Positions 41,691 through 50,719 of a stretch of 64,000 nt of DNA are shown here, piece by piece (position 1 is the first letter of the stretch; every line of letters begins with the position of its first letter). A program made the translations under genes and the position numbers. The DNA lies in assembly GCA_038496445.1 (NCBI GenBank), contig JALMLS010000310.1, positions 339,023 to 403,022 of the forward strand. Reading direction: 5' to 3'. The DNA comes from Trichosphaerium sp. ATCC 40318 (lineage: Eukaryota > Protista > Tubulinea). The notes beneath the pieces were generated by a model that ran no database searches, was not told where the DNA came from, and worked only from the letters and a program-made list of their open reading frames with translations.

Positions 41691-44600
41691 ATGGCCACAG
41701 CGCCTCCTAATGGCGTTTGCGTGCGCACGCTTGAGCAGCGCATCAAGCAGGTACGTATTTTATTGCGTTTTGATGTACATTGCGCTAAGATGTCATCTAC
41801 AGGCGAATTCATTCGTTGGAAAACAAACTCAGTTAAAAAACTCCATGTTGGCCAAAAAAGAGAAAGCAAATGACATAGTTAGCAAGAAAATGGCTGAATT
41901 ACGCAGCCTAGTCGACGATTGGGAACGTAGATTTATTGAAACTGCAGATGAAACAATAGATCTCAAAATAACCGCTATTGACAAACAGGTGCGTCGTTAT
42001 GGACAGTGATACACGTATAAAACAGTGCACCACAATTAAAACGAACCTTCTTGTTAACTCATCTAAAACCGCTAGATTAAAGAAGTTAAAGCTATAAAAG
42101 ACGAATACACAAAGTATTTACAAGATTGGCGTTTAGAAGATGATCTTGACGACACTTCTGTTTCAGAATCCGAAACCGAGACAGAAAACGAGGTATACGC
42201 TTACCTGTTAATCCGATTGATCTTTTTCTGGGTTTACTAAATAACGTTAATAACAGAGTTACAGCGAAATGGAGTACAAACGCATAGAGATGATGAAACC
42301 GCCCGATCAACGCTTAAAAGAAAAGTATGACAGCAAATTTCCGCTTAAACCCGAAGGATACTCTGCAGAAGAGGTAGAGGTTATTGCTGGACTTGGTTCT
42401 ATACTAGATGTACGTTTAAAATCTGTTAAATCGATTCTACAATATCACCAGCGATGGTTTTTTCCGTCGATGTCAACATTCCTTCAGTTAACATAGTAAA
42501 CGTCACTTTTATTTTTCTGATGTTTACTTTTTGTTTCGGCATGTAGGAAGGAAGTAAGTCATTAGCTAGATCCCTTACACTTGTTGGAGGCGTAGTAAGA
42601 GGATACCTGAAGAGAGGACATAACCATAAGAAAGATAAATGGGTTAAGCTGCTTAGAAGTGCGTGTTTTTTAGGAAAAAGAATGACATGTCATGTCTCTG
42701 TTTAGTTTCTACTTATTTATATGGATCTTGTTTTCATTACTAATATGTTAAATAGAGCTTGAAGGACGTCCTGACATTCAATCATCACCAACATTTGAAA
42801 ACAAACCAATGATAAAAGAGTACTCAGTTATCAAACAAACTAGGGTTAAGACAGTACCTGTACGCGGTCATTTTATTACCATGATGTCATCCGTAATGTA
42901 TTAAATGCTTATCAATATTCGTAGCGTGGTCGTGATAGTGTATGGCGTGCTGTTAGTGACTTGTACAGATATAAAGGAAATACACTCATGCAACAACGTA
43001 TTTGTGAAGAGTTGTCTAACCTTCACAACACGTGCCCTAGCGAGGTCGAATTTTACATACTACAACTTGTGTACGTCGCACTATTGTTTGGTTCATCATC
43101 GCAGTACTGAATATACCTTAGTACACTGTATCTCAACTCAGGGAAGGGCGAGACTAAGCCTATAAAGAATTTATTGTTGTCTAAAGCTAGGAAGTCTCCG
43201 TTATTCGCTTTAGGCGTTTATGTTTTCTCTGATGCGTTATCTGATGAAGATTCATCACCTAGTAAGCGCTGGTTAAGGCGTAGTAGAAAGGTAAGGCTTT
43301 GTTAGTCTTCGTGATAGTATTGTGTTGACAAGGTGCTTTTTTTACAGTTCAAGAAACGTTTGGAAAGCTGTGCTGCTGGCGTTGAAGCTTCCGAACATAC
43401 CGAAACTGAATCAAATGGAAAGTCTAATGTATGAACTTTTAATTGTCTTACTAGTACTTTAACTTACGTTCTCTTTGAAGTATGCCTTGCTAGATAGCTC
43501 TGAAGGTGATAGCCAGAAGTGTAAGTGATTTTAACTTGGGAATCAAAATTGTGTTTACTGTTTTCTAATACACTCTTTGCAGCTGGCTCTGGTCGTAGAC
43601 AGATATTTGCAGACCAGCTACAATTCTTACACAGGATGGTTGATATCTCTAAAGGCTTAGGAGAGAAATTTTCTGATAAGGAATCATGGCTTCCTGAATT
43701 AGTTGCTAAATTAAACGTACTCCAAAAGTGCGTCGACTTTTATTTCTTCGAGATTGTATTTTTTTTATGACTTCGTAGATCTGCTGAGACTCAATCATTG
43801 TACATACCAACAAAATATGATACTGAAAAAGATATACGTCAACGTGTTTTACGTATTGTAAGCGAGAATGCTTTTCCTATTGGGACATATGGAAGAGTAC
43901 GTTGAAATTTCCTTTTTTTTTTTTGTTTACAAAGAGTTTATCTGTTTATGGCTTATTACTCATGTAGGTACTTTATCACACTATTTTTGAAGTTGTTGAT
44001 ATACCTTCTACTATATCTCATAGCATGGAGCAACGTTATGTAGATTTAAAGTCAGAGTTCTCAGCAAAAGGAAAACGAAAAGGTTCGTTTTTATTTACTT
44101 GTTTTTTTGTCGTATGAGCGTAACACTTTTCGAATAGATAGCCAAACTAGTGCTTCACCTATGGTTAAAAGAAAATCTAGGACAAAGGCACGTGAATAGT
44201 TAGCCATCTCGAAAAGTTTGGAGACTTTTCATGAAAGGAAAGAAGGTGCTTACGTTTTTTGCTTAGGTGCCTTTTGGAGAGCGATGGCGAGACCAGAAAA
44301 AAGCTTTACGTGATGGATCTCATTACGGACGATTACCTCATTGGAATGCACAAGCTTTAATTATTAAACATGGTGATTTTGTACTACAAGAACAGGTGCG
44401 TTTAAAGAACCAAAAAAAAAACCTTGACAAAGCCACTATCTACCCATTGTGTTCCTGAACATTTTAACATTTTTTTTAGTTTACTTTACAATTGATTGTA
44501 ATGTTCAAACGTATTTGGGCTGAAGAACGTATTCCTCTGAAGCTTATTATGTATCCTTTTTTTTTTTTTTCGAAATTTTTTTGATTTGTCTCTTGTGGAT

Positions 44601-45854
44601 ACCTTGACTATATCAAGATATAAAATAACTGCATTAAGCTCACGAAGTGGTCTTATAGAGGTTGTTCCGAATTGCTTGTCTCTTGATAGATTGAAGCAAA
44701 ATGTTCCTAAATTCACAACATTGGCTGAGTACTTTCAACAACATTATAGTGATCCTGCACGTCTTGAGAAGGCTAGAAAGAATTTTGTTAGAACATTAGC
44801 CGCGTATTCACTATTATCTTACTTTTTACAAATCAAAGATCGGTACGTCAAAGCATGTGAGACAATGCAACGTTTCGTTGTTTTTTTGTTATTCGTAAGA
44901 ATTTTTCGAGAATTTTTTTTTTTGGATTTTCTTCTTCCTCTCGTACATGAAGAACAAAAAATTCTTCTGAAACAAAAATATGCAAGAATGATATTTGATA
45001 AGTCGATTAAGATGATTTACTGGATTTTTACTGACTTTTATATTGAATAGGCATAACGGTAATATTATGCTTGATATGGATGGTAATTTGTTTCATATTG
45101 ATTTTGGTTATTTACTTGGAAGGACTATGGATTTTGAAAAAGCACCATTCAAACTTACAGAAGAATATGTTGATGTTATGGGAGGTGATAAAAGCGACTT
45201 GTTTAAGGTATACAAAACACAAACTTTGTAGTTTCTTTTTTTTTTTTTTGAGTTATTTTTCTGTAAAAGAATCTCTTTGTTTAATCTTTGTTGTAGGATT
45301 ACTGTCTTCTTTGTGTTCAGGGATTTTTAGCATTAAGACGAAACTATCAAAAAATATTGTTTCTTATTGAAATGACAAAACCACGTGCGTATTTCAAGCT
45401 TTGCTAGTCAACAACAACAAAAAAGTCTATCATTTTAAAACCTATGATCTCTTTTCGTTCTCTGCTACTCAACCTCGCAAAAATACAGTTTGTTGAGCAA
45501 TAATACACTAAGTATCTATTGCGGAACGTGAGATAAGACAGAAAAAAAATAGTCACGTGATTCTTTAGCTTGTTCAAGTCAAAGCTATCACTTATGCTTT
45601 TTTTTCTTTTTTTTTTGGTTGACAGTTGGAAATATGAAGTCTTGTTCGCTTACTTTGGTTTTTTAGAAGGTAGTTCTGCTATTCCTTGTTTGGAACAAGA
45701 GGATGTTGTTTTAGAGTTATTGAAACGATTCCACTTGGACTGGACTGAAGAACAATGCGAGCAGTTTGTTATTAATCTTATTAAAGAAGCAAGAGATAAT
45801 TGGCGTACACAAATATACGATACTTATCAAAGGCTTCTAAATGATATATACTAA
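41691..45854 (+). CDS. PI4KB: Phosphatidylinositol 4-kinase, type III (beta-like), with N-terminal coiled region
   Basis: [91 protein letters not shown]. Confidence 0.9.
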
Positions 45855-47618: not shown

Positions 47619-50600
47619 TTATAATTGTAGAGTCATAGGTTGTTTAAAGACTTGTACTTGCGTTGTTTTAATAATGGTAACTGTATCTCGTAGAACAGGA
47701 TGAAGTGTTCTCAAGTAAGCAACAACATCATCACTTGTTCCTTCTTTTAAAACAAAATCATGTCCGTCACAAGCATGACGTACAAACCAATCATGACACA
47801 TCATTCCTATAATCTCTCCTTCCATATGCATTGTGTATTCTAGTATCTGTAAAAAGACATCAAGGCATTCAACGCCACATTGATGTTTTACAAAGCCTGA
47901 TAAAACATATCCTTTCATTCTTTCGATTTGGTACTTATCACTTAACTTGTAAAGCATCCATAGAGTATCTATATCGTTTAAGGGAATGCTGTCTTTGTAT
48001 AGATAATCCAATAAAAGGTTGACGACATGGAGAGGTTCACCAATTTTGATGACATTAGCATTCTTATCTGTTGATTGATTTGATACCAGAATTTGTTCAA
48101 AGAACGGTATGCGTGCTACTAAGATAACCTAAAACAATACAATCAGATATTATATTACAATACTACGAGCCATCACAGTATTGGCTAGATAAAAGAAAAC
48201 TCGGAACAGTAAACAAAACAAAGAAAAAAAGTGCAAAAAGAAATAATGTACCTTGTGACACTTCAGTTCGTTGTCATCACTAGTCTTTAGAATTAAGTCC
48301 TTTGATTCCTCATGCTTGTATAGTCTATTTAAAGATCTTTTGATACCCTTCGAATTGATAAAGTAACATCCTGGCTTGGTCCTTTGGATTTCTTTTACGA
48401 GCTTATTCGTTTTAAGTGATTGTAACAGTTTTATAAATGAAGGTTCCGTTAGGTCATCGTATTGAACTGATTTGCCATAAATACAAGAAATAAGACAATT
48501 GAACGCTCTAGAAGAATGGTCAAGCTTCAGGACAGAATCGATTTCTCCAGCATCTACAAACAGTTCAGGCACTTGGCTCTCGACGAATACCTAAAAAAAG
48601 TAAGTTACAAATGTGTTTTTGCTTTTTTCTTACCCTGCTGATCTTAATTGATGACTCTTGGTTTAGTTTAAACTCAAAGTCATTAAACACTTCATATTTA
48701 TCTTCTCTGAGCCTACTAAACTCTGATGGAATTTTAGTAGCATCGCTTAAATCAGGAAACAAGTAAGACTTAAATGACTTTCCAAATCGAGTTTCAGGCT
48801 TCGCTTTACTCTCCTCAGTCTCCTCTTTCGAAAATGTGAGTATTTACATAAAATTATTAGTAGTGAGGTACCTCCACGTCTTGTCTTATAAGCAATTTTC
48901 TCAATTATGCGAACCAAGGGAAAGTGCAAATCGAACTCTGTTAGTGTGCTGCAAATGAACATTACATTGTATCTTCCTTTATTAATAGTCTTTTTCAAAT
49001 CTTCAATGATGTGTAAGACAATTTCATCAACATCAGATGAACCTTAAATAAAAATAAGCAAACAAAGTTATAGGCATTGATTGAACAACTGATATCGATC
49101 AAAAGAAAGAAAAAAATAGGAATATTCTTGTATTGTGGTCTAAGGGCTCTCAATAAATTAAATTTTCTTTTTTGTTTAATTTATGGGATCAATAAGGCAT
49201 GTTTTTAACGTACCTTTGTAGTGTGGAAACATTTTTTGGAATTTAACGAAGTTCTCAGGCATTAACTTTTTGAGAAGATCATATTTTGATAAAACTATAA
49301 TGACGCTGGCATGTGCTAACCATTTACTGCTAATTAGTTCTGAGAGTAAAACCTTCGCTTCTTCGTATGAATTTGTTTGTGCATCTTCATACAACAAGTA
49401 CATGAAGCTTGAGAGTTAAAGACAAAACAAAAAAAGAAATTCCAATAAATTTACAAAGTCACAACACGTAAACAACTATGGATTAGTGTCTTGCCTATGC
49501 CTTACTTTGAGAACAATTCAAAAAAGATACTCGGTCAGTGACACCACATGGCAAATATAATGTACATTTCCAAAGCAATGTAACCATTTTCTCCGTTCAT
49601 TTCGAGGACCTTAATAAATAAAAACTTAGACCAACTGCACAAAATAATAAAAAGTAGCATAAGCCTTCAACACAACAATGCTTTCACAGCTTATAACAAA
49701 AAACTCTAATTTTAATAAACAAATACTAAAAGAAAAGTATTATTGAGTACTGAGTAAAACGTGGTAAGCCTGAGGAACAAATACTTTTAAAACTAAAAAA
49801 GACGTACCACCAACATCCAAAAGCTTAAACTGTTGACCATTATGGCCTAAGTACTCTTTTTCTACAATCCCTGTTGTCCTTATACGTACATTCATTATTT
49901 CAGGTATTGTTACTTCCCATCCTTTAGTTCTTTTTGCAACAGCGTTCATTAAACTGAATAGAAAAAGTTTAGTAAGAAAGTTCATTTTGTATTCATTCTA
50001 TTTTCAGCTTATATATCAACGTACATAGATAAATTATGCATAGGGCTATTGTAAACAAGAGATTCTTTAAATGCAGTACATTCATCCATGAATTCTGAAT
50101 TGACGAGTCTGTAAAAATACTATTAACTTCTTTCTCAGAAAATTCTGTTTTTTTCTCCCTTTCACGTACTTTTTAACAGCATCAAAACAAGATTGCTCCG
50201 AGTCGAAATTATAATTGCAAGTACGATTAGGATCGTCTGGATCCGATAGACTCAAAATAGCGGATTGAGTGCTCTAGTTAATTAATTAAACCAAATCAAA
50301 GACCAGATCTTTAGCAGTAAGCCGTGCCTTCTGGCAACGATTAAAATAAGGACTTCGTTTAAAATCCTGTAAACAATTCCATATTTGATGTGTAATAGCC
50401 CTGTTGTAAGCTCGTCGGGCTTCTACATCCTGCTGAAGCAATTGTACGTAAAAATGCTTAACAAACGTAGATTTGCCTATTTACATGACTGAATAAGCTA
50501 ATAACCGCTTTTATTTCGTGCTAACCGCTGAATGCCGATCCTGGTGTGTATTAGTTTCAAATTAAATAACTGACGGTGTTTGATACGCCTACCAAGTACT

Positions 50601-50719
50601 AGAATCGTGATTTCGTCTATCTCTAGTTTTTTCGCTTCAATTACAGCTTTTTTGATAGATTTCAGTTTTCCAGCCTTATCTAGCCTGTCTACCGCATGCT
50701 TACATTTTTTGTTACCCAT
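47619..50719 (-). CDS. Atypical heterotrimeric G-protein alpha subunit fused to tandem BTB/POZ domains and a BACK-like region
   Basis: MGNKKC; ILVLGSAFSGKSTFVK; RIRTTGIVE; LLDVGGPRNERRKWLHCF; LYED..N; LSKYD; ICST. Spliced in frame to FNDFEFK..FNCLISCIYG (BTB1) and SKDLILK..LKCHKVILVARIPFF..LLDYLY..LSDKYQIERMK (BTB2). Confidence 0.85.

Follow-up and report, generated by a model that had tools for sequence, protein, structure and literature searches.

The window analysed here is a 64,000-nucleotide (nt) stretch of the genome of the amoeba Trichosphaerium sp. ATCC 40318 (GenBank assembly GCA_038496445.1, contig JALMLS010000310.1, positions 339,023 to 403,022), and its minus strand carries, from 50719 down to 47619, a gene that very probably encodes a fusion of a heterotrimeric G-protein alpha subunit (G-alpha) with BTB domains. 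The reading that we favour, and to which we give about an even chance, is that the product of 714 amino acids (aa) is a lipid-anchored, GTPase-impaired G-alpha joined to a SPOP-like BTB module, which would recruit Cullin-3 (Cul3) to a bound partner. An earlier note, made from the sequence alone, had described a RhoBTB-like architecture built on a G-alpha; Pfam, PDB, fold and gene-structure evidence supports this description, except that the first of the two BTB domains (BTB1) is weak.

The gene model has 12 coding exons and translates into 714 aa without stops. Exons 1 to 6 lie at 50719-50593, 50540-50526, 50476-50292, 50273-50170, 50108-50025 and 49953-49808, and exons 7 to 12 at 49609-49531, 49407-49214, 49042-48872, 48824-48634, 48590-48252 and 48128-47619, all on the minus strand. 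The gene limits given in the earlier note were retained: the start codon is the ATG at 50719, which opens the N-terminal sequence MGNKKCK, and the stop codon is the TAA at 47621-47619. Introns measure 43-198 nt, with the exception of an 18-nt gap between exons 3 and 4 (see below). A tblastn search of the 64-kb window with the 714-aa model returned this locus as the sole match. The window is AT-rich (about 36% G+C) and has many short introns, which fits the published Trichosphaerium draft genome, with its 37.7% G+C and its 8.7 introns per gene of 75 bp mean length (PMC10521059).

The RNA evidence comes from assembled contigs of two runs (X1 and X3) rather than from raw reads. A 602-nt contig of X1 joins 48250/48252 to 48126/48128 and so removes intron 11 (48251-48129, minus strand; 123 nt, GT..AG), which lies inside the second BTB domain (BTB2); both BTB exons are therefore transcribed and spliced. 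A contig of X3 spans 50737-50592, and its loose end (reverse complement) consists of exon 1, then GATCGGCATTCAGCG, then the start of exon 3, which confirms introns 1 and 2 as well as the 15-nt micro-exon of the P-loop between them (50526-50540, minus strand), coding for G-SAFS-G, that is, SAFS and two split Gly codons. Over exon 8, an X1 contig extends at least 81 nt into intron 7 and is unspliced there. Word depth in X1 is similar on the two halves of the gene, at 6.7 on the G-alpha exon and 6.0 on the BTB exons. Between the RNA contigs and the window the sequence divergence is about 2%, and the coding differences between the X1 contigs and the genome (seven synonymous and five non-synonymous) may be taken as a mild sign of constraint. 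The locus is a real, transcribed and spliced gene of an intron-rich amoeba.

The G-alpha domain covers aa 1-368 (48873-50719, minus strand), and its elements appear in the order MGNKKCK, alpha-N helix, GSAFSGKST, an insert of about 143 aa, RIRTTG, DVGGP-RNERRKWLHCF, SKYD and ICST. Pfam and structure/homology searches were run on single exon pieces. Three of these pieces matched PF00503 (14.6, 26.9 and 46.1 bits, 87.6 summed; profile positions 155-280), and in the PDB search exon 8 aligned with Gs, Gq, Gi and Gt chains (E 1.5e-05) and exon 6 with Go and Gi. The Ras-like core specific to G-alpha is thus present from switch I to beta5. The last G-alpha exon (beta6/alpha5) gave no G-alpha match when searched alone; by eye, YNVMFICSTLT and the helix after it are collinear with the G5 region. 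The helical-domain exon pieces had no match among the hidden Markov models (HMMs), and the roughly 143 residues between GKST (aa 48-51) and RTTG (aa 197-200) have the length that a helical domain would have.

Several nucleotide-binding motifs depart from consensus. The P-loop is GSAFSGKST at aa 43-51 instead of GAGESGKST (the micro-exon sequence is seen in RNA), switch II is DVGGP at aa 218-222 instead of DVGGQ and so lacks the catalytic Gln, SKYD replaces NKxD with the Lys and Asp retained and the Asn changed to Ser, and ICST replaces TCAT with Ala changed to Ser. Switch I (RIRTTG, aa 195-200) keeps its Arg and Thr, which we take to be R178 and T181 of Gi1, the catalytic Arg and the Mg-binding Thr. 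Judged from these motifs, the phosphate, Mg and guanine contacts appear to be partly retained (GKST, switch I Arg/Thr and K-x-D). A complete G-alpha with motifs G1-G5, as the locus was first described, is an overstatement: the PF00503 and PDB matches and the MG start agree with it, but G1, G3, G4 and G5 are off consensus. In Gi1 and Gs, fast GTP hydrolysis depends on the Gln of switch II and on the second Gly of the P-loop, and since both are changed here the G-alpha domain is predicted to be hydrolysis-impaired. The switch II sequence RNERRKWLHCF and the TTGIVE sequence are strongly conserved. The switch II surface is where G-beta, regulator of G-protein signalling (RGS) proteins and effectors bind, and from its conservation we infer that partner binding may be the selected function of this domain. 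At the N-terminus, MGNKKCK would suit N-myristoylation, with a Cys and basic residues close by.

BTB2 (aa 519-640; 47844-48332, minus strand) was detected in exon 12 with the Pfam BTB profile PF00651 at 29.8 bits (cut-off 20.5, E 7.4e-07), although the first 27 positions of the profile fall on exon 11. It is followed by 3-box/BACK-like helices (aa 641-698) and a disordered 16-aa tail (aa 699-714), together encoded at 47622-47843 (minus strand). An AlphaFold model of exon 12, computed from a small alignment, had a predicted local distance difference test (pLDDT) score of 69, with helices at 86-149. The best PDB matches found with Foldseek were SPOP BTB/3-box, KBTBD4, KLHL11 and KBTBD2 (template modelling score about 0.5, E about 2e-3), and the aligned columns, about 147, extend into the helices beyond the BTB core, as expected of a 3-box/BACK extension. 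The ESM Atlas search with the BTB2 model gave BTB and BACK-Kelch clusters. BTB2 with a BACK-like region, as proposed at the outset, is in line with the Pfam score and with the AlphaFold/Foldseek matches to SPOP, KBTBD4 and KLHL11, and the BACK-like reading seems reasonable at moderate confidence. When 1.84 billion representative proteins were searched by phmmer with BTB2 and the C-terminus, five matches came up at E <= 1e-3 and no close relative. Four are true matches (P0002-P0005), namely distant, generic tandem-BTB/BTB-Kelch proteins from metatranscriptomes, a spider and a yeast. The top match, P0001, was rejected as spurious, being a plant NAM/NAC protein.

The two halves are joined by a predicted phase-1 intron of 47 nt (intron 9; 48825-48871, minus strand), which leads from the end of helix 5 (...AYKTRRG) to a linker. 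The junction reads ...CGT GGA G/GTACCT...TACTAAT...CGAAAG/AG GAG, where slashes mark the splice sites and TACTAAT is a branch-like site. The earlier note had given this intron the same phase and splice-site letters at about the same position, all of which are found in the sequence while the splice itself is predicted; its claim that the unspliced frame stops at 48747 is likewise borne out, the unspliced G-alpha frame running through a Leu/Arg/Cys-rich sequence to that stop. The linker (aa 369-411, 43 aa; 48697-48824, minus strand) begins EETEESKAKPETRFGKSF..., is charged and is probably disordered. Log-odds of codon usage, trained on the other long open frames of the window, give the linker +0.32 when it is read in the fusion frame and -0.16 in the read-through G-alpha frame, with values of about +0.15 in other exons and of -0.1 to -0.3 in introns. 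Beyond the junction, the first Met comes only after 235 residues (aa 368 to 603), a Met-free stretch that includes the linker, the whole of BTB1 and half of BTB2.

It is highly improbable that two adjacent but independent genes, one for a G-alpha and one for a BTB protein, have been wrongly joined in the model. Such an error would agree with the finding that the junction is bridged by no RNA contig, but the gap is only 47 nt, the downstream part has no in-frame ATG for 235 codons, and the exon in which BTB1 begins has a 5' part that looks coding in no frame but that of the fusion. The missing Met and the short gap, together with the codon usage of the linker and the similar RNA depth on the two halves, lead us to read the locus as a single gene. 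As the BTB exons are coding-like and have no start of their own, they should be translated within some longer product, and upstream of them nothing but the G-alpha exons is coding. We regard the existence of a fusion transcript as highly likely.

In the mechanism that would follow from the favoured reading, the G-alpha-BTB protein would be located at the membrane with a C-terminus unable to dock into a receptor. In the predicted main isoform helix 5 has no free C-terminus, because the predicted splice of intron 9 carries IIEKIAYKTRRG into the linker. The G-alpha domain would be held in one nucleotide state and its surface would hold a G-protein partner, which could be G-beta-gamma, an RGS protein or an effector. 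The BTB module would then dimerise and recruit Cullin-3, with the result that the partner, or the protein itself, would be ubiquitylated; the GTPase-like domain may also restrain the BTB module, as it does in RhoBTB. We infer the Cul3 adaptor function from the fold and from precedent. In animals, KCTD5/Cul3 ubiquitylates G-beta-gamma (PMC10348674, PMC11047111), and so the proposed logic exists in cells.

A number of observations weigh against this reading, and they are set out here and in the following four paragraphs together with the alternatives on which they bear. The in-frame TAA and TAG at 50274-50291 demand either an unusually short intron of 18 nt or an alternative splice. They lie in the GT..AG stretch GTTTAATTAATTAACTAG (minus strand), on either side of which exons 3 and 4 share one common frame; the unbroken G-alpha frame implied in the earlier note was thus an overstatement, as two in-frame stops separate these exons. 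When frame-preserving, stop-free splice pairs were enumerated, the alternatives ranged from 30 to 96 nt and longer, and the 96-nt intron would drop 26 residues, a segment with a weak codon score (+0.05). The 18-nt stretch, to which no RNA contig extends, could be a tiny intron, a portion of a longer intron, or the footprint of an insertion/excision. Within it, the motif TTAATTAATTAA (50274-50291, minus strand) has a stop in all three frames. Reassignment of TAA and TAG of the ciliate type was also considered for this stretch and was rejected, as no other exon has an in-frame TAA or TAG.

These stops, if no 18-nt intron is removed, would also be expected of a decaying paralogue copy that makes no functional product, as would the degenerate G1, G3, G4 and G5 motifs with their lost catalytic residues and a 1-nt indel at 47666 that alters the last 16 residues between the genome and the RNA contigs. 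The indel is an insertion after 47666 in contigs of both runs, shifting the frame of the last ~16 codons, and the X3 contig has a second insertion, after 47639, relative to the window; the indels at 47639-47667 may be either a strain/allele difference or an assembly indel. We consider decay quite improbable, however, since the frame is kept by all ten other introns, RNA contigs show transcription and splicing, the stops can be taken out by several in-frame splices, the conservation of switch II is strong, and the variable tail (aa 699-714) is predicted to be disordered, with a pLDDT below 50.

The RNA contigs leave 48343-49252 uncovered, and with it the junction intron (48871-48825), so that the splice from G-alpha to BTB lies outside their coverage. 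Its acceptor, moreover, is one of a tandem set, AAG/AG/GAG followed by ACTGA (48814-48826, minus strand; read from the sequence), and with the acceptor moved by +2 or +5 nt the protein would end in ...TRRGGD or ...TRRGD, leaving a free G-alpha. Judging from Gi1, these ends presumably coincide with the canonical G-alpha C-terminus. A free G-alpha isoform is thus possible because of the acceptors 2 and 5 nt downstream. We think it unlikely, however, that a free-standing G-alpha, made by way of these acceptors or by intron retention (stop at 48747), is the main product and the fusion a minor or regulated isoform. The three AGs within 7 nt at the acceptor are consistent with such an arrangement, and so is the termination of both shifted forms after 1-2 codons at the canonical G-alpha end; the BTB exons, though, occur spliced in RNA at about the depth of the G-alpha exon, and they combine the lack of a start codon of their own with a synonymous excess and coding-type codon usage. 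A bolder version, which we rate as similarly doubtful, is a splice-controlled switch in which the three AG acceptors would choose between a free, receptor-competent G-alpha and a Cul3-adaptor fusion that destroys its own partners, across a lineage-specific family. Alternative splicing, and not GTP hydrolysis, would in that event shut down a G-protein pathway.

BTB1 (aa 412-505; 48372-48696, minus strand), a divergent BTB-like domain interrupted by intron 10 (48633-48591), falls under every significance threshold. The exon-11 piece alone scored 15.9 bits with the Pfam BTB profile, below the 20.5 cut-off; a local BTB HMM gave 4.9 bits, hhalign a probability of 6.7%, and comparison with tandem-BTB proteins (local HMM, phmmer) only 4-5 bits. 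Run on exon pieces, the BTB HMM check suggested in the earlier note thus placed BTB2 over the threshold and BTB1 under it. In the ESM Atlas feature search, however, 74 of the top 100 matches of exon 11 were BTB-only clusters (best score 0.91), and by eye the pattern of BTB1 fits a BTB; an AlphaFold model of exon 11 alone (pLDDT 45) was not used. The BTB1 of the original description is thus supported by its language-model neighbours and not by Pfam, the local HMM or hhalign, and it is probably a degenerate BTB.

The phi-x-E motif in the alpha3-beta4 loop contacts Cul3 in BTB domains of the KLHL/SPOP type. At this position BTB2 has Q-S-T (SNQSTD) as against L-K-E (SNLKEA) in KBTBD4, and Cul3 binding by BTB2 would therefore not be assured; BTB1 does not align at this motif. 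It is possible, though we believe less so than the adaptor role, that the fusion is real and its BTB tandem instead mediates dimerisation or clustering, or locks the G-alpha domain intramolecularly, along the lines of BTB proteins that have no Cul3 binding, such as KCTD12-type proteins, BTB-zinc-finger proteins and channel T1 domains. Besides the absence of phi-x-E from BTB2, this alternative can draw on the degenerate state of BTB1, on the strong divergence of BTB2, with four true matches among 1.84 billion representatives, and on the binding of RhoBTB BTB1 to its own GTPase domain (PMC4931677). On the other side, each of the top structural matches is a Cul3 adaptor that carries a 3-box or BACK, a region to which the helices following BTB2 align. 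The 3-box strengthens Cul3 binding in SPOP-type proteins.

Two further points count against the favoured reading. The nucleotide state of the G-alpha domain would not be predictable from its sequence, and no orthologue that would show the architecture to be conserved was found in public protein libraries or JGI contigs. A scan of the JGI metagenome contigs with BTB2 gave no relative, and fold and feature searches of the ESM Atlas returned clusters of BTB/BACK or of G-alpha, none of which combined the two families. No G-alpha-BTB fusion was found in the literature, searched under several wordings, and the survey of G-protein-coupled receptor signalling by de Mendoza makes no mention of BTB. The earlier note knew of no characterised protein built in this way, and the literature searched is in agreement, InterPro being outside that scope. 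GTPase-BTB fusions and ties between heterotrimeric G proteins and Cullin-3 ligases (CRL3) are known already; what would be new is a G-alpha as the fused GTPase.

The closest precedent in design is RhoBTB, in which a GTPase domain is followed by a linker, an aberrant BTB1, a BTB2 and a 3-box; RhoBTBs assemble Cul3 ligases, and contact between GTPase and BTB1 keeps them autoinhibited (PMC4931677). Like RhoBTB1-3 and Dictyostelium RacA, the Trichosphaerium protein has an N-terminal atypical GTPase, a linker, a BTB1 that is probably an aberrant BTB, a BTB2 and a 3-box/BACK-like region. It differs in that the GTPase is a G-alpha with a putative helical insert and a predicted lipidated N-terminus, not a Rho protein; in that its linker is charged whereas that of RhoBTB is proline-rich; and in that no bipartite insertion is seen in BTB1. 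It thus has neither the Rho-type GTPase domain nor the specific relatedness across BTB-BTB-C-terminus that define the RhoBTB subfamily. No RhoBTB was among the five phmmer matches (E <= 1e-3) of BTB2 and the C-terminus, and the resemblance would therefore be one of convergent architecture, of design rather than of descent or membership. The best structural matches point to SPOP/BPM proteins, with which the fusion shares the order of a recognition domain followed by BTB-3-box, and the distant sequence relatives of BTB2 bear a BACK_BPM_SPOP domain. In contrast to SPOP/BPM, the recognition domain here would be a G-alpha and not MATH, an additional, probably degenerate BTB lies ahead, and the phi-x-E contact to Cul3 is not conserved in BTB2.

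In function, the nearest comparison is with KCTD5, KCTD2 and KCTD17, BTB proteins that tie heterotrimeric G-protein subunits to Cullin-3 (PMC10348674, PMC11047111, PMC9976452). KCTDs, however, form pentamers with T1-type BTBs and contact G-beta-gamma by a C-terminal domain of their own, whereas here the fused G-alpha would bind the G protein and would be joined to a BTB of SPOP/KLHL type. G-alpha derives from an Arf-like ancestor, and a survey of the ARF family found lineage-specific ARF-BTB and ARF-F-box fusions and a Rab-BTB-BACK-Arf protein in Malawimonas (PMC8358228). These are likewise protist, lineage-specific combinations of a GTPase with ubiquitin-ligase adaptor domains, but the survey left out G-alpha, so that none of its fusions contains one. 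Plant XLG2 offers a parallel for the degenerate GTPase, as a G-alpha-like "decoy" that binds G-beta-gamma and RGS independently of nucleotide (bioRxiv 10.1101/795088; PMC8584482). XLGs share with the amoeba protein a G-alpha-like domain without nucleotide-binding/hydrolysis residues, joined to an extra region, but in XLGs the extension is N-terminal, the C-terminus is free and there is no BTB, whereas the amoeba protein retains GKST and the switch I Arg.

If true, the joining of a G-alpha to a SPOP-like BTB would be an independent, hard-wired version of the KCTD-type link between G proteins and Cullin-3, and would add to the cases in which a pseudo-GTPase serves for recognition or regulation. 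Such a protein would also offer a simple system in which to ask what a receptor-uncoupled, hydrolysis-impaired G-alpha binds. Should the G-alpha-BTB family prove to be large in this genome, it would represent a lineage-specific rewiring of G-protein signalling in Amoebozoa.

Among the remaining introns, intron 7 (49408-49530, minus strand) is a U12-like candidate, with the donor GA/GTATCTTT and a branch-like TCTTTAAC 7 nt before an AAG acceptor, and its junction is the only one that yields a gap-free alignment of SLTD-FMYLLYED to G-alpha. A relaxed scan of the whole window for U12 donor and branch motifs found 12 sites versus 7.6 in shuffles, which is no enrichment. Within intron 11, a short X3 contig matches only the low-complexity stretch 48208-48243 and is flanked on either side by A-rich, unrelated loose ends; the match is probably due to chance in low-complexity sequence and not to intron retention. 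On the opposite strand, the neighbouring gene has an exon at 44586-45050 (plus strand) for a PI3/PI4-kinase catalytic domain (PF00454, E 3.2e-11), with further exons probably extending to about 45850.

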